Shown here piece after piece: positions 1 through 41,808 of a stretch of 64,000 bases of DNA. Numbering within the stretch: position 1 is the first letter of the stretch; each line of letters opens with the position of its first letter. The notes beneath the pieces were generated by a model that did not search any database, had not been told where the DNA came from, and saw only the letters and a list, made by a program, of their open reading frames with translations. Source of the stretch: Macrostomum lignano (Eukaryota); contig NIVC01000031.1 of assembly GCA_002269645.1 (NCBI GenBank), positions 186,001-250,000 on the forward strand, read 5' to 3'. Both the position numbers and the translations under genes were made by a program.

Positions 1-3000
1 TTACAGCTGAAAAGAGGGCCCGTGTGGCATCTGGAAGGGACGCGGCTAAATGAGTTAGTAGAAGTTAAAGATTTCTGGGGGCGATTGTCGAAGCGATTTT
101 CAGTTTAGTGGCAGCAATTGAATGGCTTTGAAACTTTCCTAAGCTGAGATCGATCAATGCGTCGAAATCTTTTTGAATTTTATATCTCCTAATATCTTAG
201 CTTTGACTGCCAGCAAGGAAGACTTCAGAAGCCGCGAATTCGCTTCAATTAAGCATGACACAATTACTCCTATTTTAGCTCAGCTGGAAATCAGTTAGAC
301 CCTGCGGCAATTATTTTGTTGTGTACTCTAAAATTCTAGTTTTAAGTGGCAAGTCTTTCAATCTAACATAGTATATACATAGACTTTTTGTTTCTCGCTG
401 AAAATAGTGACAGCGATCAGTGAACAGGAAATGCTCAAGAAAACAATGCCTAGAATTCTATTCTATTTTCTGTGGTGTGAACAGCGTAGTGTACCAAATT
501 CTGTACCTGGTCCAGTCTACATATGTACGGAAACATCTTTATAACACACGGAAGTAAACGTGTTAGACAGATACTACGTGTAGTGCATTTATTGCCTTAA
601 TTTTATGTTCAGCGCGCATCGGGGTCTTGATTAATGACGAGCTAGCGTTATTAGATACAGTTTCCACCTGAAAGTCCCAGGAAGTTCAGACATACATGTA
701 GAGCCAAGATTGGTCGCTCGCCCTCGTAGCCCTTTGGTAGCGGAGAAGCTGGCAGAGATTCTCGGGCCCAGGTAAGTGCAGAGTCTTCCGAGTAAAGTTG
801 AGGTGCAGTCAGTCACGCACAAGTGTTAGCTGCATTCTCAACACAGCTAGTAGTTGCAGCGCTGGCAATGGATACCTCTCTGGAGGTAATCTCTTTGGAG
901 CTGAACTGCGTACCGTGGCGCTAGAATAATCGTGCTAACAACACCGATTTGCAACAAAATAATGTAGGAAATATAGGAATTCTTGGCCCTTGACATTCAT
1001 TGAACCCAAGGTAAAACTGCGCTATCAGTAAAGGCGTGACCTCTGGTATGCCTTAATTTGAATGCCATTTAGGCTTTAATGGTGCTCCATGTGTACAATG
1101 TGCCAGAGGTTGGATTTCACCGCCGACGGCGATGCACCATGACAAAAATTATGGCGGTTATTTCAACACTTGACGGCCTATCGGACTTCTTCGAGACATC
1201 ATTTGTGTTGTGTTCCTGTTAGTCCTGCATGGTACTTAACGGGGTGCTATGGAATGGAATGCTCTTCCAACCAACGAAGACCGTTGCGGAGGGTCTCGTC
1301 TGGACAAGCTGGTTGCTGCAGCGAGTTGTTAGCCTGAAGCTATAAGCCCCGCGGTATGCCAGACTCCACGGAGGCTGCGATTTAATGCCCATGGGCAATG
1401 ATGTACACGGGCGACACAATTTTCCCAATCTACAGTTCGTCTACATTTACCTCGAAGGTCTGATTCCCAACATCCGCGCAAGGATCCGCGGAGTCGCTGT
1501 GGGCTTATCTGAGTTGCATTCGTTTCGTGAGCACGGGGCATGCAGTCGTGAGGCGTTACTTCAGGTGATGGTTGAGATCGTCCCGATTCACAACACAATA
1601 AACGTCAAGTACGAGTAAGCTGCCATACAGGACAGATGGTGCATGAGGTGCAGGCAGCTCTCTTCTGCTCTCGAAAGTTTTGAAATTGTTTCGCTAGTCC
1701 GTACAAGAAGGATCGTACTTTACTAAGTGTAAATATACGCTCCTATAATATTCAATAGGTAACTATTAAGCATGGTCTAGGCTAAATCGATATGCAGATC
1801 CTAAGTGCCTATAATAGACTATCTACAATATCCACAGTTCGATCTGCAGCTGTTGTGAAAGGCTCAGAAATGCCAGCTTAACTGGAAAGAAAAATGGATA
1901 TAAAAATATTTAATATTTAAAGAAATTTTATAGAAATGAAAAACATTTTTTTACAAACTATATAGTCTCTATAAGCTTTTGAATGCGACGAAATTGCCAA
2001 ATCAGCAGCTCTGCGAGTGTAGCGGTGAAAAAAGCTTTTAATTGCATAGACCTATGTTATTAAGTTACAAGATAATTTTTTTTATTACAATTACCAGTGC
2101 CTTTTTTATCCGTTCAAATTAAACCCGTAAAAAATAACGGTATGAATGGCGTTGACATAAAACAAATATTAATATTAATAGATTTATTAAAATAGCAATT
2201 AAGGCATTGCAATAACAAGGGTTAGCGGGCTTTAGTTGTACATTAAAATACGACTGTATCAAAGGAAACAAAAATATATTTTTTATGCTGAGTTTACACT
2301 TTCTGTTAATTTAACTAGGGAGTGGATTAAAACAAAAAAAACTGCACAAGGAGGTTTGAAGCAGAGTTCCAGGGTGGAGGAGCATTATAAAATTAAAGAA
2401 GCCAAACGAAGCGGAGAGCGGAGTTGTACCAAAAGCAACAAAAACAGTGACCAGTGCGTGTCCGGGTCATTGAAAAAACGGTAAGTCAACGAAGATTACT
2501 CTTACAAAAATTATAACAAAAAATTGAATTTCTCTTGGATTTTATAATCAATTATTAATCCTATATAATCTTTAGTTCGTTTGTAATCGTACAAGCAAAA
2601 TATGAAGGTGAAAAAACGGTTGTAAAACACCACCACCATTTTCTGCTCTTTCCAAACTTGCTCGCTTCAACCGAGTGCATGCAATCAGAATTAGAGATTC
2701 AAAATAAATTACAAATAAAGGACACGATGCACTTCGAAAAAGGCATAAGTCCCTGTAAAACAAGAAAATAATACTATAAGGTTAAGGCGAAATGGTTAGT
2801 GTTAGTTGAAAAATCTACACAAACTTTGACGAATAGATTTAAAGAGTTACATTAATAATGTTTGACTATTTTTAGCGCAGATATGAGCTTACTTAATATG
2901 CAATAAATACTAACAATTTGATAGTTCATAGCAAGTTCTAACACTCAACATATTGGCTAACTTTGCTCGCGCTAAATACGTAAGCTATACTTGACCGCCA

Positions 3001-3179
3001 CGAACAATAATACGCGTACGTGTTTCCAATAATAGCGTTATTAATGATAATACAAGCTAAAAAAGAAAACAGGCTTTATACATTGCAGGAAAAAAGCAAG
3101 TTAAGTTAGTTATAAACGAAAATGTTTAAGCAGAACCGTTGGGTTTAAATATAATTTGTTTGTCTGATATCCAATCAAA

Positions 3180-3323
3180 TCACACCGGCCGAACAATGCC
3201 GTTGATATTTGTTCGTTTCAGACGATCGATAACTCGAATTAGGGACACATTGTCCGCTCGAAGTTTGCTGTTCTCAAGGCGGAGACGAGAGTTTTCCACC
3301 TCGGCTGATGCTGCGGTTGCCAA
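3180..3323 (-). CDS. PPP1R12A: MYPT alternative terminal exon B, second leucine zipper (LATAASAEVENSRLRLENSKLRADNVSLIRVIDRLKRTNINGIVRPV*)
   Basis: ATATTTTAG acceptor, phase 0, heptad L14/L21/L28/L35 with Asn at a positions, LIRVI motif as in vertebrate MYPT1, TGA stop. Confidence 0.8.
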   Translation of the reverse strand: MATAASAEVENSRLRLENSKLRADNVSLIRVIDRLKRTNINGIVRPV

Positions 3324-4707
3324 CTAAAATATGTGATATTAAATATCTGTATGTAGATAACAAACTGAAATTTATAAATGCTTATTAAATCATTAAACCG
3401 TGGATAGGTAGCAACTTGATAAGCAAAAAATGCAAGCTTTGGATTTTTAGATTTACTTTTATTTTTTTATTTTCAAGTTCCGATAAATAAAATATCAAAT
3501 CAAGTTATTCAACTATTTGAATAATTTAACGATTTAATGGTTTATAGTTAAAATTAATAGTACAAAAAATTATTGAAAAAAAACTGTTCGCGAAAATTCT
3601 AACTAGATTACGTATTAATAACAATAATCTTGAAATATTAAGAATCACTCATTTAATATAATATATATAATAATATAATTGTTTCATATTTAAACTGCAT
3701 CTATAGTTTTATATAATGTATAAAAATATTCAAATATTAGCATATTTAGATAATGATGAAGAAATGATGGAAAATTATAATTATTTTCTATCATTATGAT
3801 TTATTCATGCAATGCCAATTATTGGTTGAAAATGAAGGGTCAACTATAAAACTGAAAATCATGTTGTATACGATAAAATTTTGAATATATAATTTATTAT
3901 ATATGCATAAATGTCACCACAAATCACTAACAAAACTACTAATTATCAGTATGAAGCAATACTGCAAAATTGCATTCCATTTCCAACTAACAAAACATAC
4001 TTGCATGCGAAAACGCTGCTTACTACTTAAACGAGTAGCCTAGTCGAGCCGACTTGAATTGCTCCGTTTTCGATTGCCGAATAAGCGAAATTTTCTTTTC
4101 TTATAACTATTTTAATTAGTTTGATTCAATCAAGAGAAAGAACTATGAATTGAAGATTGTACCAGAGCGAGAATGAAGAATGAAGAATTATCTATGAAAA
4201 TTATTTGATAAAACTTCTGGCCACCAATTGCTGATAGATTTGAGTTGGTCAGAAAAGCAGACACTAAAAAAAGAATAAACGAACTGGAGCAAAAAGACTC
4301 AGACGAAACTGTGAATACAAAGAGTTGAAAGCGGGCAACAGAAAAAGAGTCCTTGTGCATCCTTAATTATCGATTTTATTGCCGCGATAGCCGAGCCACC
4401 ACTCGAGCTAAGGCTCGGTTCTCAGCTTTGAGTTTCTCGTTCTCTCTCATGACCTGCTCCAGCGACTGCGGATCGGGGCGGTGCGTTAAGGCAGTGGGGT
4501 TCGGGCGTGGGTGGCCTGGCCTTAACTTTTAATAACAATGTACACGTAAATATAACCGTGCGACGTTTGTACGTTTCAAAATTAGTGACAATAGCTACGT
4601 GTGTTAGGAACAGTTAGACAAGTATAGCAACAAAAAGCATAATGGTAACGGACATATATTATACTGCCAAATCGGACAGATCAGCATCAAAGCATAGATA
4701 GACAGCC

Positions 4708-4743
<36 letters not shown>

Positions 4744-4891
4744 GGACGGACAGACAGGCAAGCAGACAGACAGACAGACAGACAGGCAAGCAGGCAGACA
4801 GACAGAGACAGACAAACAGACAGGCAAGCAGGCAGACAGACAGACAGACAGACAGACAGAGACAGACAGACAGACAGGCAAGCAGGCAGAC

Positions 4892-4968
<77 letters not shown>

Positions 4969-5023
4969 GGCAAGCAGGCAGACAGAGAGACAGACAGACA
5001 GACAGACAGGCAAGCAGGCAGAC

Positions 5024-5054
<31 letters not shown>

Positions 5055-5071
5055 GGGACAGACAGACAGAA

Positions 5072-5135
<64 letters not shown>

Positions 5136-5183
5136 GACATAAACGCGGAACGCACACAGACAGACGGACAGACAGGCAGACAT

Positions 5184-5276
<93 letters not shown>

Positions 5277-5411
5277 GGCAAGCAGGCAGACAGAGAGACA
5301 GACAGACAGACAGACAGGCAAGCAGGCAGACAGAGAGACAGACAGACAGACAGACAGGCAAGCAGGCAGACAGAGAGACAGACAGACAGACAGACAGGCA
5401 AGCAGGCAGAC

Positions 5412-5471
<60 letters not shown>

Positions 5472-5491
5472 GACATAAACGCGGAACGCAC

Positions 5492-5529
<38 letters not shown>

Positions 5530-8500
5530 GACATAAACGCGGAACGCACACAGACAGACGGACAGACAGGCAGACATACAGACAGACAGACAGACAGACA
5601 GGCAGACAGACAGACAGACAGCTAGCTGGCACTCACCCTGTTCTGAGCCTCATACTCGGACAGCCGTCTATCCACTTGCCGTTGCTCGCTCGACTGCCGC
5701 TTCAGCTGCTCATTCTCCTCCCGCAGGCGGCCATTCTCAGCATTCAACCGTTCGTTAGCGGCTTTCTCTTTCTCATAGAGTCGCTTGTAATCTAAATCAG
5801 ACGATGACGGCGAGGAGGCTGAAGATGAAGACGCGGTTGCGCCGTAGGCGGAGCCGTGATAGGACCCGGGCCGGGAGCGGGACAGGCCGGAGTGGCCTGT
5901 GTCGGCGATGGCCTGTGAGCTGCCTCTGCCTGAGTCGGACTGGGAGGTCAAGGGTGATTCGAACTCAAATTTAACTAGAAGAAAGTTAGCAATCGTTTTA
6001 TTTAAGTTGAATACAGCTGGGTCTTGGATAGGGGGTTGTACGAGCGTAGCCTGGTGGTTAGAGTGTCTGGGGTTCGATTCTCGACCGATTCGGAACAATT
6101 TGTGTCCTTGAGCAAGGCCCTTAGCCCTGCATTGCTTCAGTTCACCCATCTGTAAAATGGGTGCCAGCATTAGCTGGGGTAATTGAGGGTGTGTGTGGCG
6201 ACCCCCCCAGTCCTTGGACTGAACCTTCAGATGCGCCGCGCAATAGCTGCGGCTGAGCTGTCGGTTGCACATCTGGCCATTAGGGCAGGTGTAATCAATT
6301 ATTATTTATTATTAGGGGAAGAGCAGAGAAGCTGAGTCCAACATTGAATTGGGTCTTTTGTGCCCAAAAAATCCACCCGAGGGTTGTCATGCGATTCAGG
6401 TATATTCAGGCCTAACGATTAGAAAGTCAGGTATATGCTGAGGAGTCTGCTGAGGAGTCAGCGGAATGGGACCGCAGAATTGCCCCAGCCCTCCTGTGAA
6501 TAGTTAGCTGCTATGATCTACTTCATGTATAGATACTGCCAAAGTGAATGTCAAAGATAAGAGAGATTGAAAAAAAAATTAGATTGTTTGTACAGTTACA
6601 TACCCGGCTGTTTTTTGGGCACTTAAGTGGCTTGAAGTGGCTTATTAGAGTGCTTTTCGAGTGGCGTTTCGAATGCCATAAACACTTAGAGTATATTCTG
6701 CTATTGTAGGAATTGAAATCTTTATATAAATTAAATATCCCCTATGGATTGGATTTATAGGAATTAAATACCCCTTGATGGTGAATTCAGAGGAATTGAA
6801 TACCCCTTGATGGTGAGTTCAGAGGAACTGAATACTCCTTGATGGTGAGTTCAGAGGAACTGAATACCCCTTGATGGTGAGTTCAGAGGAATTGAATACC
6901 CCTTGATGGTGAGTTCAGAGGAACTGAATACCCCTTGATGGCGATTTCAGAGGAATTAAATACCCCTTGATGGTGAGTTCAGAGGAATTAAATACCCCTT
7001 GATGGTGAGTTCAGAGGAATTAAATACCCCTTGATGGTGAGTTTAGAGGAATTGAATACCCCTTGATGGTGAGTTCAGAGGAATTGAATACCTCTTGATG
7101 GTGAGTTCAGAGGAATTGAATACCCCTTGATGGTGAGTTCAGAGGAATTAAATACCCCTTGATGGCGATTTCCTATTGAATACCCTTTGATTGTGAGTTC
7201 AGAGGAACTGAATACCCCTTGATGGTGAGTTCAGAGGAATTAAATACCCCTTGATGGCGATTTCCTATTGAATACCCTTTGATTGTGAGTTCAGAGGAAT
7301 TGAATACCCCTTGATGGTGAGTTCAGAGGAATTAAATACCCCTTGATGGCGATTTCCTATTGAATACCCTTTGATGGTGAGTTCAGAGGAATCAAATACC
7401 CCTTGATTGTGGGTTAAGAGGAATTGAATACCCCTTGATAGTGATTTCAGAGGAACTGAATACCCCTTGATGGTGAGTACAGAGGAACTGAATACCCCTT
7501 GATGGTGAGTTCAGAGGAATCAAATACCCCTTGATTGTGGGTTAAGAGGAATTGAATACCCCTTGATAGTGATTTCAGAGGAACTGAATACCCCTTGATG
7601 GTGATTTCAGAGGTGGAGAACTGTCGGGGAAGTCCGCTCAACATGCCAGAGCACTCACAGAGTCCACAGAGTCAGAAGATTTAGCCAAATATCTCGAATG
7701 CTTTCTGGTTGACTGCGGTGTCAAATAAGACGCAGCAGCAGCAGAAGCAGCAGACGGTTGCTGACTAAACCCGGAACCCGCCGAACTCGAATGACGAAAC
7801 GAGCCACGGCGCGAGGCTGGCGCGCTGCCACCGAAACTGCTGGCGCCACTAGCGCTAGAGGCGCCGCTACTAATGCTTAACAGAGCGCCAAGAGGCCCAC
7901 CGTAGCAGACATTGCTGCCACCGGCAGAAGAAGACAGTGGCGAACCGGAGTGCACAGAACGAGGCGTTGAAGTGGCTCGAAACAGAGGCATTTCCTGTGG
8001 CTTCCAACCTTCTAGACTGTCTTCTGCTTTTAGGGTCTCTCTGTTTGTGTGTTGTACGAACCGAAACCAACCGAGCAAAGCAACGGGGGGGATTCCAACA
8101 AAGACAGTCAAGTTCAGAAGATTTATCCTTTATCCCAAGCTCTAAACCCCTAACCCTAGCATCTGGATGGTCAACCCCAATGCTGTAAAAAAAGCCAATG
8201 AAGCCGAGCCAGAATCCGGTTTTAGCAGATTGGTCCGCCGCCCATACAGTCCTGCAGTTCGCTAATTCGCTTCCTTCCCCTACCTACAAGTCTGTCTGTA
8301 CCTCTGCCCCAACTTTCAAGCCAGAAAGAACAACACTGTTCGGTAATGTACACGCAAGTTCGAAATAAGGGCAGCCTTTTTCAGCAGCCTCAGGAGCTCC
8401 TCTTGATCGAAATGAAAGAGAAGAAAGTTAGGTGTGACCGAAATAAACGGGGTAGGGGGTTGGGAGGACGAAGATTAGAAAGAATCCTGAAAGCTGCCCT

Positions 8501-11262
8501 CTTTTTTTTCTTACCTGCGCTGGCAGAAGGTTACCCTGTAGAGTTACATTGAATTCTGTTAGACCAGCAAACCTCATCGGAGCTTTAATTAGCTGCAGAT
8601 GCTTGCCTAGCATTTCTGCTTTGGTTGAACATGCAGTCTTGTTTCTGACTGACTGACTGCCTGACTGACTGACTGACTGACTGACTGACTGACTGACTGA
8701 TTGACTGATTGACTGACTGACTGACTGACTGACTGACTGACTGACTGACTGACTGACTGACTGACTGACTGACTGACTGACTGACTGACTGACTGACTGA
8801 CTGACTGACTGACTGACTGACTGACTGACTGACTGACTGACTGACTGACTGACTGACTGACTGACTGACTGACTGACTGACTGACTGAATGACTGCCTGA
8901 CTGACTGACTGACTGACTGACTGACTGACTGACTGACTGACTGACTGACTGACTGACTGACTGACTGACTGACTGACTGACTGACTGACTGACTGACTGA
9001 CTGACTGACTGACTGACTGACTGAATGACTGACTGAATGACTGCCTGACTGACTGACTGACTGACTGACTGACTGACTGACTGACTGACTGACTGACTGA
9101 CTGACTGACTGACTGACTGACTGACTGACTGACTGGAGTGAGTGGGTGACTGACTGACTGAGAGACAGAAAAATTACATTTCAGTGTCCATCAGTCATTA
9201 AAAAACCTGCATGTCACTGATTGATGAGAACAGCGCTCAATCAAAAAAACAAACATCATACACGCTAGCAAATATGATGCCATCAAATAAAGCTCACCTG
9301 ATCCCCAGCAGTTGGCGGCAAGCCCATAGTAGCCTGTCGCCGATTAAAACGACTATACCGGCTACTGCTAGCACTACTGCCAGTAGTAGCAGTCCCTCTA
9401 CCAGCAGAATCATCATCTGTACTAGCGTTTGTCGACGCGGCGGGTACAGCAGAAGCCGAGGTGGAGGAATCTTCCAGTACAGCGGGCAGCGGCTGCTTCG
9501 AGGAGGCTCCAGTTACGCTGACTCCAGAGTCATTGCTGCTGTGATAGGAGGCTGCGGCATCTGAACTATTTGTCGAAGTGTCATTAGCCGCTGAAGCAGC
9601 CGCTTGTCGTTCTTCCACAAGTTTCTTCGCCTGCTCGACAACATCTTGTGCGACACCCTGCGTGGCTCGTTTTGTTGCCCGATTACGTCGCGAGATCCGA
9701 CGGCGTTCCGTCTCCGACTCTTCCACCTTCTCCTTCTCCATGATGGCCGACACGCGTCGATCCGAGGAGCCTCCGACGGCATCGACGGTCTTCTCGTTCG
9801 CTGGCTCCGGTTCGGCCACGATGCTGGGAACTGGGAGACGGTTGACGGCTTCGGGCTGCGGCTGGGGCTGCGGCTCCTGCACCTTTGGCGTCTTGTCAGT
9901 GTCCGTCTGTGGGTTGACAGGAGAGTCACACTGCTGTATGTCTGTGCTGTCATCACACTGCTGTACTGTCATCATCACACTGCTGTACTGCCATCACACT
10001 GCTGTACTGTCATCATCACACTGCTGTACTGTCATCATCACACTGCTGTACTGCCGACACACCGCTGTACTGTCATCACATTGCTGTACTGTCACAACAT
10101 TGCTGTACTGTCACAACATTGCTGTACTGTCACAGCTTTCTATCGAATCGCTCAATCCCAATATGGCACTTCTGAAAGACACGTTCACGCGAAAAAAGCA
10201 AACAACAAATTAATCTTCACTGCATGCATCTGCAGCTGAGCATGGCTTATTAATTAAAATCATGCGGAAAACTTTAAACAAATTTCACGATCTTTAACAC
10301 AGGTAAAAGTTCCTCTCCGATCCTTCAGTGACCCTCCCGATCATTCAGAGACTTTCTCCGATCTTTCAGTGACCCTCTCCGATCTTTCAGTGACCCTCCC
10401 TGATCTTTCAGTGACTCTCCGATCTTTCAGTGACCCTCCCCGATCGTTCAGTGACCCTCTCTCTAAACCTTCAGTGACCCTCTTCTGATCCTTCAGTGAC
10501 CCCCCTCCCAATCTTACAGTGAACCTCTTCTGATTCTTGAGTGACCTCCCCCGATCCTTTAGTGACCCTCTCAGATCCTTTAGTGACCTCCCCCGATCCT
10601 TTAGTGACCCTCTCAGATCCTTCAGTGACCTCTCCCGATCCTTTAGTGACCCTCTCAGATCCTTCAGTGACCTCCCCCGATCATTTAGTGACCTTCTCAG
10701 ATCCTTCAGTGACCTCCCCTGATCCTTCAGTGACCCTTCCCGATCTTTCAGTGACCCTCTCCCTGATCCTTCAGTGACTCTTCCCGATCCTTCAGTGACC
10801 CTCCCCGATCTTTCAGTGACCCTCCCCGATCATTCAGTGACCTCTCCCGATCTTTTAGTGACCCTCTCAGATCCTTCAGTGACCGAACAGTCTCACAACA
10901 GATAACGGCAGTGTCAAACCTTTCCGGCAGAGAAGTGCCTCTTCAACTGGCTAAAAGAACTGGCACCAGATTGGTCGGTAGACAGGATGACGGAGGCTGC
11001 CCGACCGTTGCCGCCGCTAATATTAAAATTTCTTCTACGAGTTTGAACGCCACTTGTTGCGCTGTTCTCTTGCCAACTTTCCATGCGTTTTAGCAGAGTC
11101 TGCGCAATATTAAATTAATAATTTAACTCATTCGGGTAAGTTGGGCACACAGCAAACCACATAAAATATTAGTACAAAAATGAGGGGCCAAGCTTGGGTC
11201 ATAGAAATGTTCAAAAACATCGTGCAAGGTTTCTGATCAAGGACCATAAAAAATTTCTGTTG

Positions 11263-11327
<65 letters not shown>

Positions 11328-11355
11328 GGCAGACAGACAGACAGACAGACAGAGG

Positions 11356-11399
<44 letters not shown>

Positions 11400-11423
11400 G
11401 GCAGACAGAAAGACAGACAGAGG

Positions 11424-11481
<58 letters not shown>

Positions 11482-11523
11482 AAGACAGAAAGACAGAAAG
11501 ACAGACAGAGAGACAGACAGAGG

Positions 11524-11565
<42 letters not shown>

Positions 11566-11651
11566 AAGACAGAAAGACAGACAGACAGACAGACAGAGGG
11601 ACAGACAGACAGAAAGACAGAAAGACAGACAGACAGACAGACAGACAGAGG

Positions 11652-11727
<76 letters not shown>

Positions 11728-11755
11728 GGCAGACAGACAGACAGACAGACAGAGG

Positions 11756-11795
<40 letters not shown>

Positions 11796-11819
11796 GGCAG
11801 ACAGAAAGACAGACAGAGG

Positions 11820-11873
<54 letters not shown>

Positions 11874-11938
11874 AAGACAGAAAGACAGAAAGACAGACAG
11901 AGAGACAGACAGAGGGACAGACAGACAGAAAGACAGAA

Positions 11939-11969
<31 letters not shown>

Positions 11970-11974
11970 GGGAC

Positions 11975-12029
<55 letters not shown>

Positions 12030-12053
12030 GGCAGACAGACAGACAGACAGAGG

Positions 12054-12103
<50 letters not shown>

Positions 12104-12168
12104 AAGACAGAAAGACAGAAAGACAGACAGACAGACAGACAGAGGGACAGACAGACAGAAAGACAGAA

Positions 12169-12199
<31 letters not shown>

Positions 12200-12201
12200 G
12201 G

Positions 12202-12295
<94 letters not shown>

Positions 12296-12297
12296 GG

Positions 12298-12351
<54 letters not shown>

Positions 12352-12437
12352 AAGACAGAAAGACAGACAGACAGACAGACAGAGGGACAGACAGACAGAA
12401 AGACAGAAAGACAGACAGACAGACAGACAGACAGAGG

Positions 12438-12485
<48 letters not shown>

Positions 12486-12492
12486 TGAAGGC

Positions 12493-12545
<53 letters not shown>

Positions 12546-21500: not shown

Positions 21501-24500
21501 ACAATTCAGATTGAGGTACAGATGGATGATAAACACAATTCAGATTGAGGTACAGATGGATGATAAACACAATTCAGATTGGGATATAGATGGACGATAA
21601 ACACAATTCAGATTGAGGTACAGATGGACGATAAACACAATTCAGATTGAGGTACAGATGGATGATAAACACAATTCAGATTGGGATATAGATGGACGAT
21701 AAACACAATTCAGATTGAGGTACAGATGGACGATAAACACAATTCAGATTGAGGTACAGATGGATGATAAACACAATTTAGATTGGGGTACAGATGGATG
21801 ATAAACACAATTCAGATTGAGGTACAGATGGATGATAAACACAATTTAGATTGAAGTACAGATGAATGATAAACACAATTCAGATTGGGATATAGATGGA
21901 TGATAAACACAATTCAGATTGGGATATAGATGGACGATAAACACAATTCAGATTGAGGTACAGATGGATGATAAACACAATTCAGATTGAGGTACAGATG
22001 GATGATAAACACAATTCAGATTGAGGTACAGATGGACGATAAACACAATTCAGATTGAGGTACAGATGGATGATAAACACAATTCAGATTGAGGTACAGA
22101 TGGACGATAAACACAATTTAGATTTGGGTACAGATGGATGATAAACACAATTTAGATTGGGGTACAGACGGGTGATAAATAAGATTGACGTATAGATGGA
22201 TAGTAAACACAAATCCGATTGAGGCACATTGTTAGCAAACGAAAATAAACTAAGATTAAAATAAAAAAACTATTTAAACGCAATTAATAAAAGGTGGCAA
22301 AAGTACAAGCGAACAAATTCAGAGACTCACCGCCTTGAAGTGTAAGGCTTGGATCCATCATCTTCTTTCATACTAGTAATGATTGGTTGCTTGCCAGACT
22401 CCTTCATTAGCTACAAAAATTAATTTAGTTAAACAGTTTACATTATATTAAGTATGATTTCTTTGAACTTATTATTCATTTCATACACGGCCATCTTACT
22501 GACCTCTTTTTGTTTCGCTTGAAGCTCTTTAAGAAGGCTGTGCAGTTCTTCTTCGGCGATATCAAAAACTGTTTGATTCTGAAATAGGGAAGGTTAGTTG
22601 AATAGAGTTGTTGATGAGGTGCTAAGGCTCATGGGGATGGTGCTGAGATGCCGAGGATCAAAGGGGTGCTGATATCTTAAGCTAGATAGATAGCTCTCAG
22701 GACTGATGCTTTTTCGATTGGAGCGTCACTGAATCTGTATTGGAAAGTCACTGAATCTGTATTGGAAAGTCACTGAATCTGAATTGGAAAGTCACTGAAT
22801 CTGAATTGGAAAGTCACTGAATCTGAATTGGAAAGTCACTGAATCTGGATTGGATAGTCACTGAATCTGGATTGGAAAGTCACTAAATCTGAATTGGAAA
22901 GTCACTGAATCTGGATTGGATAGTCACTGAATCTGGATTGGAAAGTCACTGAATCTGGATTGGAAAGTCACTGAATCTGGATTGGATAGTCACTGAATCT
23001 GGATTGGAAAGTTACTGAATCTGGATTGGATAGTCACTGAATCTGGATTGGAAAGTCACTGAATCTGGATTGGATAGTCACTGAATCTGGATTGGAAAGT
23101 CACTGAATCTGGATTGGAAAGTCACTGAATCTTGATTGGAAAGTCACTGAATCTTGATTGGAAAGTCACTGAATCTTGATTGGAAAGTCACTGAATCTGA
23201 ATTGAAAAGTCACTGAATCTGGATTGGAAAGTCACTGAATCTGGATTGAAAAGTCACTGAATCTGGATTGAAAAGTCACTGAATCTTGATTGGAAAGTCA
23301 CTGAATCTGAATTGGAAAGTCACTGAATCTGAATTGGAAAGTCACGGAATCTTGATTGGAAAGTCACTGAATCTTGATTGGAAAGTCACTGAATCTTGAT
23401 TGGAAAGTCACTGAATCTGAATTGAAAAGTCACTGAATCTGGATTGGAAAGTCACTGAATCTGGATTGGAAAGTCACTGAATCTGGATTGGAAAGTCACT
23501 GAATCTGGATTGGATAGTCACTGAATCTGGATTGGAAAGTTACTGAATCTGGATTGGATAGTCACTGAATCTGGATTGGAAAGTCACTGAATCTGGATTG
23601 GATAGTCACTGAATCTGGATTGGAAAGTCACTGAATCTGGATTGGAAAGTCACTGAATCTGGATTGGAAAGTCACTGAATCTTGATTGGAAAGTCACTGA
23701 ATCTTGATTGGAATGTCACTGAATCTGAATTGAAAAGTCACTGAATCTGGATTGGAAAGTCACTGAATCTGGATTGAAAAGTCACTGAATCTGGATTGAA
23801 AAGTCACTGAATCTTGATTGGAAAGTCACTGAATCTGAATTGGAAAGTCACTGAATCTGAATTGGAAAGTCACGGAATCTTGATTGGAAAGTCACTGAAT
23901 CTTGATTGGAAAGTCACTGAATCTGAATTGAAAAGTCACTGAATCTGGATTGGAAAGTCACTGAATCTGGATTGAAAAGTCACTGAATCTGGATTGAAAA
24001 GTCACTGAATCTTGATTGGAAAGTCACTGAATCTGAATTGGAAAGTCACTGAATCTGAATTGGAAAGTCACGGAATCTTGATTGGAAAGTCACTGAATCT
24101 TGATTGGAAAGTCACTGAATCTTGATTGGAAAGTCACTGAATCTGAATTGAAAAGTCACTGAATCTGGATTGGAAAGTCACTGAATCTGGATTGGAAAGT
24201 CACTGAATTTGGATTGGAAAGTCCCATTGCAAATTTTAATTTGCAATGGGAACAATAAAAAAACATTGATGAGCTGTCAAAATAATCCAAACTAAGAGCC
24301 TATAACGTTAGATTCAAGAAAATTTTAGAAAGGCAAAAAACATGGACAGAAAAGCCGTTAAAAATGCATTAAAGGTTGCTCCAATTAACGGACACGAAAT
24401 GTTGCGCGCAATTTGGCATGGGGATCAAGTCTGCACTGAGGCACTTCAACGCTTCAGTGTCGCAGTTTCAAACTATTCTTAGTCAATAAATAGATAGACA

Positions 24501-27500
24501 GAATTCAATGGGGATTGTACAGTGCATAGAGACCCTGTCAATGTGCAGACATTATGACTAATAGAAAATCAAATTATTTCCTGAATACTGATGACAGACA
24601 GACGGACAGACAGACAGACACAGACAGAAGCTAGCACAGACAATAGCAGGCACTAACACAGACAGACAGACACAAGAAACACACTAACAGGAACTAACAG
24701 ACAGACAGTAAGACAGACTAACAGACACAAAGACACACTAACAGACAGACAGATTAACAGACACAGACAAAAACTAGCACAGACAATACCAGGCACTAAC
24801 ACAGACAGACAGACACTAAGACACACTAACAGGAACTAACAGACAGACAGTAAAACCGACTAATAGACACAAAGACACACTAACAGACAGACAGACTAAC
24901 AGACACAAAGACAGAAACTAGCACAGACAATAGCAGGCACTAACACAGACAGACGGACACTAACACTAAACAATGCATTTTAGCATTCAAGTTCCAACGA
25001 TCCAAAGAGAGGCGGACGGGAAGACAGTGTGAGGCGGAGTCGCGGCATGGCTAAACATCTAAACATGCAGCCGCAGGGTTAAAGCGAGATTTTAGCTGAG
25101 CCAAGCTTTAGCCACGGTAGTTGGGGGGGATGATTATTGTTGCACTTTAAACGCACTGCTGCAAGCTGCTGTCGTTGAAACCAACAAAAGCATCGACCGA
25201 CCGAACAGAGAGTGAGAGGCAGAGAGGAAGACAGGGGGGGGGGGGGGGGGGGGCGGGACAAAGCATGAAAGGCCGCCATCGCAAAAAGCGAAGTCCAGTG
25301 TACCATCTGAACCTTCTAGTTCCACCTTTCCCAAATCCCAACCCCGAATCCCCCAAAAAAACGCACGACACGCCAAACCGTGCATTCCGGATAGCCCGCG
25401 AGTTAGAATACAATTTAAGGGAAAAGCTTAACGGTCTGTTCGAGGAAACTGAACAACAAGAAAATTCTACAGCACCGCCTAGCCTAATAAAACCCTGGTT
25501 GACAATAGATACACCCCTATGCATATCTATATCTAGCCTCGAAATGCTGGTAGATAACGGAGAAGTGGTTAATAAAAGTGATTTATATTTACAGAGAGAG
25601 CTAGAGGCTTGTGAGACACTTGGAGAATTAAAAAATGCCTTGCACACTTTTACTTGACCTGAAGTTCACATGGTCAAATCATTTTAAATCATCAAATTTA
25701 GATCGATTGAGGGTCTGAGATAGTTACAGAGGGTCTGAGATAATTTATTTTTTTTTATTAGAGGCAGGGGGGGGGGGTTGTGTGCACCCTGGCGCACTTT
25801 AAGCGACATAGGCACACAACCGGCGAGAGGCATTACTGCCCATTCCGCCGACTCCCCTGAGCAGGCATACAAGCGCGCGGATACGTACGCAGGCACACAC
25901 CCACACAGGAGTGTACAGCGGCCCTAACTTTATTTATCGTTAGGCATGTACACTTCACTGCGCCTTGGGGGAGTTGGCTCTCAAGGCCGTTAACTGCACG
26001 AGCAGAGCCAAGCCGAGATTCCAATTCAGCTTCAAATTAATGTGACTGCACTTGGAATCGAGCCTGGGTCGCTGGCACACCAGAGCAGCTGCGCTACCGC
26101 TGGGCTACGGCCCCCCTTGTCTAAGATAATTACAGAGGGTCTGAGATAATTACAGAGGGTCTGAGATAATTACAGAGGGTCTGAGATAATTACAGAGGGT
26201 CTGAGATAATTACAGAGGGTCTGAGATAATTATAGAGGGTCTGAGATAATTACAGAGGGTCTGAGATAATTACAGAGGGTCTGAGATAATTATAGAGGGT
26301 CTGAGATAATTACAGAGGGTCTGAGATAATTACAGAGGGTCTGAGATAATTACAGAGGGTCTGAGATAATTACAGAGGGTCTAAGATAATTACAGAGGGT
26401 CTGAGATAATTACAGAGGGTCTGAGATAATTATAGAGGGTCTGAGATAATTATAGAGGGGCTGAGATAATTATAGAGGGTCTGAGATAATTACAGAGGGT
26501 CTGAGATAATTACAGAGGGTCTGAGATTGTGACAGAGTTCGATATGAATATCTAGGCAGTCTTTGTAATGTTATGTTTAAATAAAATTCAGGTGTAGACA
26601 GCCAGGTGAGATAAGATAATGAATTAATTGGATAGCGTATTGCGCAGAGAAGACTGAAATAATTAAGACAAAAGAAAAAAATACACGCGAGGCCACACGC
26701 CCAGCAAGAACTTCTCACCGCGTGAGTCACCGCAGCCATGTCCGCGCCATTGGATGCCAGCACTTTGCAGGCGGCCTCTTGGCCCCAATGGGCGGCCGCG
26801 TGCAACGGAGTCCAACCGTCGCAGTCGCGATCGTTAATATCAACGCCGGGGCATTGCAGCAGAGTGCTCAACACTATTGAGTAGCCTTTAGCGGCGGCCA
26901 CGTGCAGTGGGGAGGCGTGCGATCTGGGATCGCGTACGCAACGATAGCGGCCCTCTTTTAGCCAGGCGCGCGCGTCTTTTTGCATAGCCAGCGCCTCAGC
27001 ATTTCTGGCTCGGTTCTCGTCTATTAGGGCCATGCTCGCCTTCAGCAGCTGCTTCATATCCCAGGATTCTGCCACGTCTATGGGCAGGTCGCCGTCATTG
27101 TTGGCGATGCCCACCTGGGGATGGGGATCGGGCTTTATAGCTTCATTTGGGTCAAGGTGACTGTTCGCGTCAGTCATTTGATCTGGGTCAAGGTACTGTC
27201 TATGTCAGTCATTTGATCTGGGTCAAGGTTACTGTCTATGTGAGTCATTTGATCTGGGTCAAGGTGACTGTCTGCGTGAGTCATTTGATCTGGGTCAAGG
27301 TTACTGTCTACGTGAGTCATTTGATCTGGGTCAAGGTTACTGTCTATGTGAGTCATTTGATCTGGGTCAAGGTTACTGTCTGCGTAAGTCATTTGATCTG
27401 GGTCAAGGTTACTGTCTACGTGAGTCATTTGATCTGGGTCAAAGTTATTCTGTGAGTCATTAGAAAATTAAAGATTTCCTAATCATATTCAATCGACGTC

Positions 27501-29606
27501 TAATTCATCAGTTAAATTATGTCTTACCTTAGCACCTTCTTTAAGTAGGTACTTGGCCACTTCCGTATGGCCACCCAGTGCTGTGGCATGTAGTGGTGTC
27601 CAACCTTCACTATCTCTAGCATGAATATCAGCTCCATGCTCAATTAAAAACTTGATCAGATCCAACTTATTGTCAATGCATGCCTAAAATTTTAGATATA
27701 GTATAATTTTGCATTAGTATATGCATCACTATTTGTATATTTTTAATTAAAGAAACAATAGAAAAAAAATGTAAGTCTAATTTTTCATGCAATAAAGCTT
27801 TTTATCTACTAGACTTTACTTATTTCATTGTATCAAATAGCTTTCCAATTTACTCATTTCTAGTTTACTATTAAAAAAGTAAGAAATATAATCTTTGATA
27901 AGCTATTATTTACTATTTTACAATTAGTTAATTGTTTATAATATATAGTTTATAAGATTTAAAAATTAAACATTATAATAAAAACCTATTTTACTAAAAT
28001 TATATTATTATTGGCCTTCCATCAAGATATATATTAATTCTTTTTTTAGAAATTACCTAGTTACTTTCCATTATTAAATAATTGCTTGAACTTATAAATA
28101 GATGGATCTAAAAACATAGCTAAATAATAAATATAAATTGTGATAGAAAATCACTAAATTTGATACCATGATTATACATAAGTAATATGATAAACCTAAA
28201 AGATTTACAATACATAACTAAAGCATTTTTGTTTTAAAAAATAAATATTTTATCAAATATTTGACTTAGCCTAACTTATACAATCAATGAGCTACAAAAA
28301 TATTAAATTAAAGCCTACAAAAATATTAAAATATTATTTTATGATCCAAATGTACTATTTTGATTCAACAAATTCAATAACAATTCTATTTATTTTAGCA
28401 TAAAAATTATATATTATATTTTTATGCACATGTGACATAATCATTTAATAGATTTTTTATGCTTTGAACATTCTTTAATAGATAATATAGACTTAAAATA
28501 GGAAGGAACACAATTGGAGCATTTTAACTTACTGGGTAAAAAAATGAAAAGTTCCTCATACAGGAAAAATTATTATATAATTGAGGTTAAAGTTGTTATA
28601 ATTGTTATATATTAGAAAAAATTACTTTAGTAGAGTCAATTGAAGTCAATCAAATTTTTAACTTCTAAATAAATTGCTTTTCTTTAGAAGTCAGATAAAA
28701 TTTGGCAATTATTAAGATTGCATATCAATTTAAGTAACTTATAAATATAATATAGACTCTACATACATTGGATAAAAAACAAGAATACATTAATATATAT
28801 ATTATTCAGGCACACTATTAAGCAACTGATTATAAATCTACAGGATTGGAAACATAAAATAAAAATATATAATAGATAAATAATATAGCCCATACTATTT
28901 TTAAAAAATGCCATATTATTTTAACTTACTTTAATTAGATTAGAACAATATAAAATATAAAATGGTCATTTCATTTTTTTCTCTTTATAATATTCTTTTT
29001 GATTGCAATATATATTAAATTTTCTTGGATTTTCTTAGAATGTACTCACCATGTCAATAAAATAAAATGTATGAAAATAAGTATCCAAAAAAGATTCTAC
29101 TGAATAAGCATGTTTTATAATCTCAATAGTCAATACAAGTTAAAGTTAAATTAAGAATAAGCAAACATGCAATATTTATATAAACTAGCATATTTACTCC
29201 TATAATTATAAATAACAAAAATAGTATAATTTTTTTTAAAACAAAAAATATTAAGTAGATTAAAGGGTTATTAAAATGACCATTTCACTATTAACAGCTA
29301 AATGAAACATTGGCTAAAATGTATCACATTTATTCCAAATAAACAAACCTGGTGCAAGGCTGTCAGGCCATCAATGTTACTAGTGTTAATGTCGACCTTG
29401 TCTTTTAGAAATCTCGAAATCTCATCATAATCAGTTGCATTGCATGCAGCAAGAAAAGCAACTTCTGGTTTAAACTTCACTCTTTCTGGGTTTTTTACAC
29501 TTGCTGATGCTTGGTTGGCTTCAGAAGTCTCCCATGCAGTTAGCTGTTCCCTTCTCTTATGCAGATTATTTACAGGCGTCGTAGTACCATTTCCACTGGT
29601 ACCCAT
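3180..29606 (-). CDS. PPP1R12A: Myosin phosphatase targeting subunit (MYPT1/PPP1R12/Mbs family), whole spliced gene, 11-12 coding exons, about 1,010 aa
   Basis: Hand-spliced minus-strand exons join in compatible phase. Family motifs occur in the expected order: RREQLTAW (MyPhoNE), RVKF, ankyrin repeats (GLTALHQ, GWTPLHA, SPLHVAAAKGY, GWTPLHAAAHWG), RRSSVTR, KRATQGV, DYKRLYE, leucine zipper. Which vertebrate paralogue (12A/B/C) is closest cannot be resolved. Confidence 0.93.
4376..4465 (-). CDS. PPP1R12A: MYPT terminal exon A, leucine zipper (SLEQVMRENEKLKAENRALARVVARLSRQ*)
   Basis: CCGCAG acceptor, phase 0, heptad V5/L12/L19/L26, TAA stop. Confidence 0.88.
   Translation of the reverse strand, partial: SLEQVMRENEKLKAENRALARVVARLSRQ
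4701..5620. repeat. (GACA)n microsatellite with GGCA variants and three copies of a GACGACATAAACGCGGAACGCACACA insert
   Basis: Direct reading. Confidence 0.97.
5637..5939 (-). CDS. PPP1R12A: MYPT exon 10, coiled coil (SDSGRGSS...DYKRLYEKEKAANERL...EAQNR)
   Basis: CCTCCCAG acceptor, AGG|GTGAGT donor, 101 codons, family DYKxLYE motif. Confidence 0.9.
6031..6313 (+). mobile_element. tRNA-derived CORE-like SINE family 1, copy 1
   Basis: Degenerate A box, B box GGTTCGATTC, core GTGTCCTTGAGCAAG...CTTCAGTTCACCCATCTGTAAAATGG, (TTA)n tail. Homologous to three other copies here. Confidence 0.85.
6762..7612. repeat. 32-bp minisatellite GAATTGAATACCCCTTGATGGTGAGTTCAGAG
   Basis: Direct reading, about 26 copies. 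Confidence 0.95.
7659..7994 (-). CDS. PPP1R12A: MYPT exon 9, Ser/Gly-rich (EMPLFRATSTPRS...SSDSVDS); 5' boundary uncertain
   Basis: Open frame with TCT|GTGAGT donor. The only phase-0 AG found (CCACAG at 7995-7997) has a poor pyrimidine tract, so the true acceptor may lie up to about 50 nt upstream. Confidence 0.7.
8515..8535 (-). CDS. PPP1R12A: Candidate 21-nt MYPT microexon (GNLLPAQ)
   Basis: CTAAC branch-like motif, CTCTACAG acceptor, CAG|GTAAGA donor, phase 0-0. Confidence 0.5.
8646..9160. repeat. (GACT)n microsatellite
   Basis: Direct reading. Confidence 0.97.
9298..9906 (-). CDS. PPP1R12A: MYPT exon 8 with inhibitory-site region (ESETERRRISRRNRATKRATQGVAQD)
   Basis: CCCACAG acceptor, CAG|GTGAGC donor, 203 codons. 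Motif matches the MYPT1 EESESQRKARSRQARQSRRSTQGV region. Confidence 0.9.
9928..10133. repeat. 19-22-bp minisatellite CACTGCTGTACTGTCATCA(TCA)
   Basis: Direct reading; abuts the exon 8 acceptor. Confidence 0.9.
10318..10883. repeat. 21-bp minisatellite GATCCTTCAGTGACCCTCTCC
   Basis: Direct reading. Confidence 0.93.
10920..11099 (-). CDS. PPP1R12A: MYPT exon 7 (TLLKRMESWQE...LKRHFSAGK)
   Basis: GCGCAG acceptor, AAG|GTTTGA donor (same GTTTG type as exon 1), 60 open codons, phase 0-0. Confidence 0.7.
11261..12590. repeat. (GACA)n microsatellite with GAAA/GGGA variants
   Basis: Direct reading. Confidence 0.97.
13008..13190. repeat. Degenerate 24-bp minisatellite TGGAATAGTCTAGGGCGATGTTTA
   Basis: Direct reading, about 7 copies. 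Confidence 0.8.
13353..13890 (-). CDS. PPP1R12A: MYPT exon 6 (SSVTRVTQSERHDL...poly-Ala...TTPSTSVK)
   Basis: CCATAG acceptor in phase 2 completes RRSSVTR. AAA|GTGAGC donor. 538 nt, open frame. Confidence 0.88.
14041..14330 (+). mobile_element. tRNA-derived CORE-like SINE family 1, copy 2
   Basis: A box TGGCCCAGTGG, B box GGTTCGATTCC, same core and 3' part. Confidence 0.9.
14331..14660 (+). mobile_element. Possible Helitron-like non-autonomous element
   Basis: Starts TATCTAATCTAAATATACT, contains CACCGATTTTGAT, ends with a GC hairpin (GCGGCATATCCGC). A related fragment lies near 16310-16355. Resemblance from memory only. Confidence 0.25.
15271..16134 (+). mobile_element. hAT-like non-autonomous DNA transposon (MITE) containing a GA-rich array
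   Basis: Imperfect terminal inverted repeats GGGGTCGGCAAAC ... CTTTGCCAACCCCTG resemble the CAGGGGT(C/T)GGCAAAC hAT/Charlie-type end. No clean 8-bp TSD found. Confidence 0.7.
15355..16020. repeat. Purine-only GAGAA/GAGAG array
   Basis: Direct reading; lies inside the hAT-like element. Confidence 0.95.
16521..17690. repeat. 16-bp compound minisatellite CATCTCACCCTGTCTC grading into TCTCACACTATCTCAA and back
   Basis: Direct reading. Confidence 0.95.
18085..19795. repeat. 21-bp polypyrimidine minisatellite CTCTTCAATCTCTCCTCTCTT
   Basis: Direct reading, about 80 copies. Confidence 0.97.
18085..19865 (-). mobile_element. Second copy of the hAT-like element, reverse orientation, one end only, with expanded 21-bp array
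   Basis: Reverse complement of 19790-19865 (CAAGGGTCGGCAAAACTTTTTACTTCA...AGATAGAGAATCTA...ACTGCGGGTCACG) aligns with 15272-15345. Confidence 0.65.
20225..22215. repeat. 34-bp minisatellite GATGGATGATAAACACAATTCAGATTGAGGTACA
   Basis: Direct reading, about 58 copies with recurring variant blocks. Confidence 0.97.
22331..22410 (-). CDS. PPP1R12A: MYPT exon 5 (LMKESGKQPIITSMKEDDGSKPYTSRR)
   Basis: TTTTTGTAG acceptor, CG|GTGAGT donor (phase 2), 93-nt upstream intron. Confidence 0.85.
22504..22578 (-). CDS. PPP1R12A: MYPT exon 4 (NQTVFDIAEEELHSLLKELQAKQKE)
   Basis: CCTATTTCAG acceptor, GAG|GTCAGT donor. Completes the last ankyrin repeat. Confidence 0.88.
22725..24222. repeat. 22-bp minisatellite GTCACTGAATCTGGATTGGAAA
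   Basis: Direct reading, about 68 copies. Confidence 0.97.
24596..24965. repeat. Complex GACA/ACTAACA-derived repeat with a longer internal duplication
   Basis: Recurring CTAGCACAGACAATA.CAGGCACTAACACAGACAGAC blocks. Confidence 0.8.
25710..26527. repeat. 20-bp minisatellite GAGGGTCTGAGATAATTACA interrupted by a SINE family 2 copy
   Basis: About 2 copies at 25710-25745 and about 20 copies at 26118-26527. Confidence 0.93.
25744..26116 (-). mobile_element. tRNA-derived SINE family 2, copy 1
   Basis: Minus strand reads GGGGCCGTAGCCCAGCGG (A box)...GGCTCGATTCC (B box-like)...GCCTCTAATAAAAAAAAA. Homologous to 35209-35537. Confidence 0.8.
26719..27114 (-). CDS. PPP1R12A: MYPT exon 3 (VGIANNDGDLPIDVAE...SPLHVAAAKGY...GWTPLHAAAHWGQ...AVTHA)
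   Basis: CCCCAG acceptor, GCG|GTGAGA donor, 132 codons, ankyrin repeats. Confidence 0.92.
27147..27452. repeat. 36-bp minisatellite GAGTCATTTGATCTGGGTCAAGGTTACTGTCTACGT
   Basis: Direct reading, about 8.5 copies filling most of intron 2. Confidence 0.95.
27528..27683 (-). CDS. PPP1R12A: MYPT exon 2 (ACIDNKLDLIKFLIEHGADIHARDSEGWTPLHATALGGHTEVAKYLLKEGAK)
   Basis: TTTTAG acceptor, AAG|GTAAGA donor, 52 codons of ankyrin repeat. Not in the ORF track. Confidence 0.92.
29349..29606 (-). CDS. PPP1R12A: MYPT exon 1 (MGTSGNG...RREQLTAW...RVKF...GLTALHQ)
   Basis: ATG at 29606, 86 codons, donor CAG|GTTTGT, phase 0. Confidence 0.9.
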
Positions 29607-37760: not shown

Positions 37761-38439
37761 ACTCTACTGGCGCCCTTTTAACAGCAGCAAGAGAGAGGCG
37801 CACCTGTTTCCAAATTTTACCAGTTCCCTAGCAACCAACTTGTCTTTGGGACCGTTTTACCATGCAAAGCACCTACCATGGCCCCCTTCCCGTCAATCGA
37901 GAGTATCCTAAATCAGAAATGCTGTTGCTAGTGAAAGTTTTTTCTTAAATGCACCTCTTAGCAATGAATTGTTCCTGTGCAGTTCAGAATGAGAGATAAC
38001 CTATTCGCTAAGGGCGTTACCGGCAAGAATGAATGCTACATTGGAAATGGATTCAGATAATAGAGCTAAGGTATACTTCTGTTTTTGTACATTTTCTTCC
38101 AATATCAATTCTTTGGAAATGGTAAAATGGTGTTTCGTAAATGGGAGCAATAGATGGTAAAAGTCTGGGAGAAACGTTTACCTGAAACCATTTATGATAG
38201 TAGATGTGCTGTTTAGGTTGGGAGTAGTGAGGAAAGAGGAAGAGAGGGAGAAGATTGGGGAGGAGTGAGGAGAGAGGAGCGAGGAGAGTGAGAGAGAGAA
38301 AAAGAGAGAGAGAGAAAGGAGGAAGAGAGGTAAGAGTCCTGAAAACCCAAATCACTTACACTGTAACGCAAATGTTTAAGCGAGTTGAGTACCGATATTT
38401 CGAATTTTCATATTCTTCCTCGGAGCTAACTCTTCAATG

Positions 38440-41272: not shown

Positions 41273-41808
41273 GGGACCGGGCGGGCCAAGGTGGATCAAG
41301 TGAAAGGCAGTGCAACAAGCAGTTTGTCACCTGTTTTTTTCGGATAGGCTTCAACTCCTATAGTTAGAAGCGAGAGAAGCCATTGATAGAGGACAATTGT
41401 GAGATTTTTCATCTATTCTTTTGCTTAGAATGGATAACTGCTTGTACGTGTGTATGACAAGGATCAGTGCTGCAATCCTTAATTCAAACACACAGGGATA
41501 CAGCCTGGGGGGTTAGACAGGTTGCAAATTCGTTTCAGACACCCATGGGATTAACGGCGACTCAGCGAGATAAGCTAGTGCGTTATTTATCCGGCGTCAA
41601 ATACGAACAGCGCTTTCCTTAATCGCCTCCAGTTAGATAAAAAAAAAAATTTCTCGGATAAAAACGCTGCATATCCGTCTTCGGTTTCTGTCTGTTTTCT
41701 CTTCCAAACACGCATGAAGCGTGTGCTTGGCTGTTTGCACAAAATGTCAAGCAGCTGTAGCTTTCATAGTGTGATAATAATAATGCTCACACGCCAACTA
41801 CAGGACCG

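Follow-up and report, generated by a model that had tools for sequence, protein, structure and literature searches.

Does the 3' end of a myosin phosphatase targeting subunit (MYPT) gene offer a choice between two complete leucine zippers, each coded by a terminal exon of its own, and would such an arrangement be new? The question was raised by a stretch of 64,000 nucleotides (hereafter the window), in which an original prediction had placed two tandem zipper-coding last exons behind a coiled-coil exon of a MYPT gene. We refer to them as exon A (proximal) and exon B (distal). Our analysis of the sequence supports, through homology, their reading as two alternative zipper-bearing (LZ+) tails. 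The 3' end of the gene very probably represents a pair of MYPT/PPP1R12 C-terminal exons, duplicated in tandem and used alternatively, that is ancestral in bilaterians.

The MYPT/PPP1R12 gene of the window

As identified by its sequence, the gene is an orthologue of MYPT/PPP1R12 (myosin phosphatase targeting subunit, Mbs-type), which runs on the minus strand from approximately 29606 down to 3180. Upstream of the 3' end, it comprises the following parts:

22495..29606, minus strand: N-terminal part with the start codon region, the RVKF PP1-docking motif and the ankyrin-repeat exons (ORF and segment lists, Pfam, tblastn with M. lignano and Artemia MYPT)
29606-29340, 27683-27525, 27117-26719 and 22584-22495, minus strand: N-terminal exons, with approximate boundaries, of the same gene as exons A and B
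9442..9768, minus strand: central exon; it contains ...RRISRRNRATKRATQGVAQD..., the conserved motif of the inhibitory site (translation; residues 634-734 of M. lignano are 51% identical)

The first coding exon contains an RVxF-type docking motif for PP1c, ...NPERVKFKPEVAFL... (ERVKFKPE), which aligned with the N-termini of M. lignano and Artemia MYPT. For the MyPhoNE motif, RxxQ[VIL][KR]x[YW] upstream of RVxF, there is a candidate in KRREQLTAW, which agrees save for a Thr at the K/R position. The ankyrin domain follows RVxF, with several stretches each for Pfam Ank_2 (130 bits) and Ank (107 bits) and E-values down to 4e-38. At approximately 9700, the central exon presents an inhibitory phosphorylation motif of the RRSTQGVT type (KRATQGV), which in a wider reading is ...RRNRATKRATQGV.... 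The PRKG1_interact domain (Pfam PF15898) was recognized when the coiled coil was joined to exon A, the score of 46.7 bits exceeding the cut-off of 32.4 (alignment to profile positions 44-101 of 101). Joined to exon B, the coiled coil covered profile positions 1-100 at 26.5 bits (E=1e-5), which is under this curated cut-off. The assignment to MYPT made by the original prediction is borne out by the RVKF motif, the ankyrin repeats, KRATQGV and PF15898.

The closest full-length match in the protein collection was M. lignano P0001 (BOX15_Mlig002238g1), with 60% identity over the N-terminal part, followed by arthropod MYPTs with approximately 50% identity. A 112-aa query made of the coiled coil and exon B, short and compositionally biased, gave no match among 5.8 billion proteins, and a PDB sequence search with the coiled coil plus B returned nothing beyond coiled-coil matches due to chance (E of 0.13 at best). 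The sole near-identical protein, P0003 (metaclust, 444 aa), is confined to N-terminal exons of the gene and matched two ankyrin exons at 100%. Its minus-strand segments (47127-46760, 44659-44126, 27117-26719, 22578-22501 and 11081-10917) place its N-terminus upstream of the MYPT start codon, at a distance of 17-20 kb, and its C-terminus at approximately 11 kb. P0003 may reflect either alternative 5' exons together with an extra exon absent from our gene model, or a chimeric gene prediction, made in this species or in one very close to it.

Several repeats occur in the window. Long minisatellites (18047-19779 and 38255-41354) translate into ERLKRRE-type or GERREEK-type repeats in several frames of both strands, and yield spurious long ORFs and weak coiled-coil-like tblastn matches. 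A dispersed SINE-like repeat, with the translation MCNRQLSRSYCAAHLK...GELKQCR.KCLAQGHK...ESNPRP, has copies at 6305-6100 (minus strand), 14313-13996 (minus), 49880-50218 (plus) and 52114-51809 (minus), of which one lies directly upstream of the coiled-coil exon. Rfam gave no match anywhere in the window, this repeat included.

Two zipper exons behind one splice donor

Splice-site reading and translation revealed two tandem exons at the 3' end of the gene, each coding for a leucine-zipper tail and a stop. The features of this region are the following:

5637..5974, minus strand: coiled-coil exon, read as penultimate and constitutive, ...DLDYKRLYEKEKAANERL...RRLSEYEAQNR, with the donor 5637/5636 common to both tails
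4466..5636, minus strand: intron between the coiled-coil exon and exon A, approximately 79% (GUCU)n microsatellite in the transcript
4376..4465, minus strand: exon A, proximal alternative terminal coding exon with an A-type zipper and the stop TAA at 4378-4376 (translation)
3800..4375, minus strand: putative 3' UTR of exon A (scan for poly(A) patterns; predicted use)
3180..3323, minus strand: exon B, distal alternative terminal coding exon with a B-type zipper, LATAASAEVENSRLRLENSKLRADNVSLIRVIDRLKRTNINGIVRPV, and the stop TGA at 3182-3180 (translation)
2081..3179, minus strand: putative 3' UTR of exon B (predicted by pattern scan only)

The coiled-coil exon, which reads ...DLDYKRLYEKEKAANERLNAENGRLREENEQLKRQSSEQRQVDRRLSEYEAQNR, is homologous to residues 740-828 of M. 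lignano P0001 and to residues 911-983 of Artemia P0051. Its 5' boundary probably lies at 5975, after ttcttctag, and it ends with ...EYEAQNR at 5637 in a consensus donor (AGG/GTGAGT, the slash marking the splice site). The two predicted phase-0 acceptors, each opening a stop-ended zipper, were found at 4465 (ccgatccgcag/TCG) and at 3323 (catattttag/TTG), and the peptides of exons A and B translate exactly as had been proposed. The resulting tails count 29 residues for exon A and 47 for exon B. These adjacent exons are homologous (57% identity over 21 aa), both are in phase with the one upstream donor, and both end in a stop. No zipper-type exon beyond A and B was found in the 64-kb window, in which the other tblastn matches were low-complexity repeats of the ERLKRRE type. 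The intron before exon A carries an (AGAC)n repeat on the plus strand, (GUCU)n in the MYPT pre-mRNA, at 4696-5621 (Tandem Repeats Finder, period 4, 234.5 copies). Since the same type of repeat, at 11128-12603, fills another intron of the MYPT gene, we give it no regulatory meaning.

Heptad assignment gave each tail four core heptads, in one common register. Positions d and a are occupied by V5, L12, L19, L26 and by L2, N9, N16, V23 in exon A, and by L14, L21, L28, L35 and by N11, N18, N25, I32 in exon B. Both tails qualify as leucine zippers, with at least four heptads having hydrophobic residues or Leu at d and hydrophobic residues or Asn at a, and they have in common a core in which Leu occupies d and Asn recurs at consecutive a positions. 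The additional heptad formerly attributed to exon B proved to be only an Ala(a)/Ala(d) pseudo-heptad, and its extension past the position of the vertebrate terminus is shorter than the 12 aa once counted, namely 10 aa (TNINGIVRPV). The LIRVI said to be kept in exon B is indeed there, as the B-type signature. Apart from the C-terminal extension, A and B differ at flanking b, e and a positions (R vs V/G, A/T vs I and V vs I, respectively); family-wide, B-type tails have G for the R of A-type tails at b, I for T/A at e and I for V at a. We infer that the broader hydrophobic face of LIRVI could alter the oligomeric state or the partner of the zipper.

Could exon B belong to another transcript or gene, or could both frames be chance ORFs? 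The six frames of positions 2000-4375 contain 12 open frames of at least 47 codons (P of approximately 0.03 per site), and an open frame alone was dismissed as evidence for an exon because such frames are common in this AT-rich stretch. Nevertheless, we regard this explanation as highly improbable, since exon B needs an upstream phase-0 donor and the sole exons upstream of it on the minus strand are those of MYPT. With an in-frame TAG immediately 5' of it and no ATG, exon B could not be translated alone, and the MYPT terminal exons of a flatworm, of arthropods and of vertebrates are its homologues in both sequence and place of the junction. An origin of exon B in another transcript, which had been named as a possible refutation, is not borne out by these observations. 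The G+C content of exon B is 50.7% vs 21.7% in the upstream 300 nt and 31.7% in the sequence downstream of it, and exon A (54.4%) and the coiled-coil exon (54.1%) have similarly exon-like values. In a tblastn comparison with other genomes, as had been advised, exon B matched the terminal exon of M. lignano (E=2.6e-11, with 75% identity over 32 aa), and A tails of arthropods and vertebrates were matched by exon A. Composition and homology were decisive here, and by both, exons A and B are more than chance.

A-type and B-type tails in other animals

The two window exons were scored on two profile HMMs, one derived from 22 distinct A tails, the other from 20 distinct B tails. Exon A reached 45.7 bits on the A-type profile and 31.4 bits on the B-type profile, which clearly points to an A-type exon. 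Its core is identical in 13 of 14 positions to the vertebrate PPP1R12B A tail, and it is near the arthropod A-type tail. Exon B reached 20.2 bits on the B-type profile and 16.7 bits on the A-type profile, a gap of 3.5 bits, so that by score its assignment to the B type is weak; it is also backed by the LIRVI signature, by the distal position of the exon and by its identity to the M. lignano terminal exon. The M. lignano tail itself scored 33.8 bits on B and 30.9 on A. With its small B-type preference and its score under the Pfam gathering value, exon B is diverged.

Among the best 120 MYPT matches, an A tail was present in 85 and a B tail in 28. At least nine arthropod species have both tail types as annotated isoforms, namely Nasonia vitripennis (A P0009, B P0033), Polistes fuscatus (P0024, P0052), Artemia franciscana (P0005, P0051), Thrips palmi (P0019, P0053), Schistocerca gregaria (P0078, P0103), Cacopsylla melanoneura (P0007, P0011), Frankliniella occidentalis (P0091, P0087), Megachile rotundata (P0063, P0066) and Aphidius gifuensis (P0015, P0036). 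Using a vertebrate MYPT2-type coiled coil joined to an A-type tail as a probe, we found both tails in vertebrate PPP1R12B as well, with the B-type in most entries and the A-type in P0133, P0136, P0137 and P0200 (camel, fin whale, rattlesnake and one transcriptome contig). That A and B are homologous alternative C-terminal zipper exons, as originally proposed, is supported by the occurrence of the same tail types as isoforms of single arthropod species and in vertebrate PPP1R12B. Other C-termini were also seen: P0104 (Polistes dominula X3) ends in ...EEELKINHVVLVAWSGAFIKRSDSG, which resembles a read-through past the common junction and looks like a third, zipper-less C-terminus, and the tail of P0106 (scallop Ylistrum balloti X5) is an A/B hybrid.

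Three genomic loci were compared with the window:

Crotalus horridus PPP1R12B (L003): junction exon 15149-15205, exon A 22461-22592, exon B 28954-29037
Aromia moschata, a beetle (L004): junction exon 17757-17840, exon A 20597-20692, exon B 28818-28898
M. lignano (L001): junction exon 22368-22559 and a single B exon, 23839-23958, 1.3 kb downstream

The order of junction exon, proximal A and distal B is identical in the window, Crotalus and Aromia, and the position of the junction is conserved, ...EEE[LM]K in Crotalus and Aromia corresponding to ...EAQNR in the window. The arrangement had been put forward as one without a known description. This claim fails because the same pair, in the same order, is present in vertebrate PPP1R12B and in many arthropods, and because it is catalogued in the literature. 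There, Martinez-Gomez et al. (2021) list for PPP1R12B a substitution by tandem exon duplication that is common with the Drosophila orthologue (PMC8373072). The paper does not name the exons of the event; since A and B are the homologous tandem pair found in PPP1R12B, we infer that the event is the A/B pair. Judging from these sequences, the A/B arrangement is an already known, conserved PPP1R12B/Mbs gene structure across Bilateria, annotated in many genomes. What the window adds is the presence of the pair outside arthropods and vertebrates, in an invertebrate gene with a flatworm MYPT as its closest match, which supports an origin before the protostome-deuterostome split.

The pair has not been retained everywhere. 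The M. lignano gene model joins the homologous junction to the B exon, and no A-type exon was detected in its 1.3-kb last intron nor in the whole 34-kb locus, which indicates that loss of the pair occurs. The locus of the scorpion Centruroides (L002) showed only an exon A, with no B exon within 10 kb. From these loci, it appears that the pair can be lost or that its exons can lie farther apart, and that it is ancient without being universally retained. Such losses, together with the score of exon B under the PF15898 cut-off, would be in line with only one of the two exons still being used in the window lineage, the other being a decaying relic of the ancestral pair. We find this improbable. 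In both window exons the frame is intact, the phase-0 acceptor usable and the a/d core regular, and the G+C content is exon-like within AT-rich flanks. Moreover, exon A keeps its near-identity to the vertebrate A core, and exon B has 75% identity to the exon used in the M. lignano gene model. Both junctions are probably used in the window gene, and probably in a mutually exclusive way, as the isoform annotation of other species suggests.

Alternative last exons and known MYPT switches

The preferred reading, an ancestral pair of alternatively used last exons, would work as follows. When donor 5637 is joined to the proximal acceptor 4465, exon A would add the A-type zipper and a stop, and the transcript would most likely end at a poly(A) site a few hundred nucleotides downstream. 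When the same donor is joined to the distal acceptor 3323, exon A would be removed within a 2.3-kb intron, and exon B would add the LIRVI zipper and its stop. The products would be two proteins alike up to ...EYEAQNR, differing only in their last 29 or 47 residues. Most likely, splicing to the distal acceptor would face competition from a proximal last exon that has a poly(A) site to itself.

Candidate poly(A) signals of exon A are AATAAA at 4380-4375, which overlaps the stop, ATTAAA at 4116-4111 and AATAAA at 3898-3893 and 3805-3800 (minus strand), the last three being situated at +259, +477 and +570 from the stop. Of the signals formerly listed, those at 3898-3893 and 3805-3800 stand, and the one overlapping the stop has its place at 4380-4375 rather than 4373-4378. 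That the stop codon of exon A sits inside an AATAAA has a counterpart in human PPP1R12A, whose stop codon is also reported to lie within AATAAA (PMC9367544); contexts of the form ...A TAA A... probably make this likeness a coincidence. No splice donor adjoins the stop of exon A, the nearest donor-like site being 375 nt downstream and agreeing with four of six consensus positions. The A exon of Crotalus is likewise without a donor after its stop and has poly(A) signals at +292 and +340. For exon B, canonical AATAAA signals occur approximately 1 kb past the stop (2188-2183 and 2086-2081), and a TATAAA variant is found at 3080-3075. An alternative-last-exon mechanism fits the missing donor, the downstream poly(A) signals and the same pattern in the snake, and exon A is probably a true terminal exon with a poly(A) site of its own.

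In the beetle Aromia, the stop of the A exon abuts a good donor (TAG/GTAACG, 20693-20700), which suggests that in insects exon A can, instead of being terminal, act as an internal cassette that carries a stop. Applied to the window, exon A would be spliced on to exon B; with A included, the protein would carry the A tail and B would fall into the 3' UTR, and with A skipped it would carry the B tail. This would be a pure choice between inclusion and skipping, formally similar to exon E24 of MYPT1, without alternative polyadenylation. In PMC8373072, C-terminal substitutions of the tandem-duplication class are attributed to either alternative poly(A) use or exon skipping, which leaves room for such a cassette. 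However, the window A stop is not followed by a GT, its only donor-like site is the poor one mentioned above, and its downstream ATTAAA and AATAAA signals and the like organization of the snake A exon argue against it. We therefore consider a cassette unlikely for the window, if somewhat less so than a relic exon, and keep exon A as an alternative last exon. For genome annotation, both 3' ends of the MYPT gene should be modelled.

What would the choice of a tail bring about? The two zippers may differ in dimerisation or in the choice of partner. A tentative proposal, which we would put at a little less than even, is that A and B form an ancient bilaterian switch, more than 600 million years old, between two binding or oligomerisation specificities, whose B form was remodelled in the window lineage. 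As one possibility, the LIRVI form would bind PKG or an M20-type partner and the NRAL.RVV form another partner or itself as a homodimer. The remodelling of B would consist of three Asn at a positions and of the 10-aa extension. We found no functional comparison of A and B tails in the literature for any animal, and any difference in what the two zippers do would concern the whole family rather than the window in particular.

A close parallel in other animals is vertebrate PPP1R12B (MYPT2; M21), which, like the window, has two homologous zipper exons after its ...EMEEEMK junction, each ended by a stop. In Crotalus, A is proximal and B distal, approximately 6.4 kb apart, with no donor after the A stop and poly(A) signals approximately 300 nt downstream. 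The vertebrate A exon codes for 44 aa vs 29 aa in the window; its N-terminal part is longer and its end acidic. Compared with vertebrate B, the window B exon is longer by 9 residues on the N-terminal side and by 10 on the C-terminal side. Human PPP1R12B isoforms of 982 and 998 aa, and hHS-M21A/B of 208 and 224 aa, presumably reflect the B and A tails, which the 16-aa difference fits. Transcription of the small subunit M21 begins at a start site inside PPP1R12B (PMC4552530), which explains vertebrate proteins of 120-180 aa with either tail. Among the three vertebrate PPP1R12 paralogues, the A/B pair was seen only in 12B. In arthropod Mbs/PPP1R12 (RefSeq models of Hymenoptera, Thysanoptera, Hemiptera, Orthoptera and Branchiopoda), either tail follows the same junction; their B tail is nearly identical to vertebrate B, whereas the window B tail is far more diverged, and the Aromia A may be a cassette exon, unlike the probably terminal window A. 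The M. lignano MYPT P0001 has the homologous junction, ...AGYEAQER followed by AAQAEAELNKLRLENSKLKADNTSLIRVISRLS, and its B exon is the one that is 75% identical to window B, but unlike the window its locus is without a detectable A-type exon.

As the vertebrate counterpart, the original prediction had cited a frameshifting switch between LZ+ and LZ- forms, an incomplete picture given the A/B pair of vertebrate PPP1R12B. That switch belongs to vertebrate MYPT1 (PPP1R12A), in which the 31-nt exon E24 lies between the ...EEELK exon and a B-type zipper exon (PMC5087845, PMC9367544). The idea that E24 is a degenerate A exon was dropped: the PPP1R12B locus of the snake contained nothing similar to E24, which speaks neither for nor against it. 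In MYPT1, as would be the case in the window, an alternative exon upstream of the B zipper decides whether this zipper is translated. In MYPT1, however, E24 shifts the frame and leads to a zipper-less tail, whereas nothing like a 31-nt frameshifting exon was seen in the window, where exons A and B are both in phase 0 and both code for zippers, so that there is no frameshift and both products would be LZ+.
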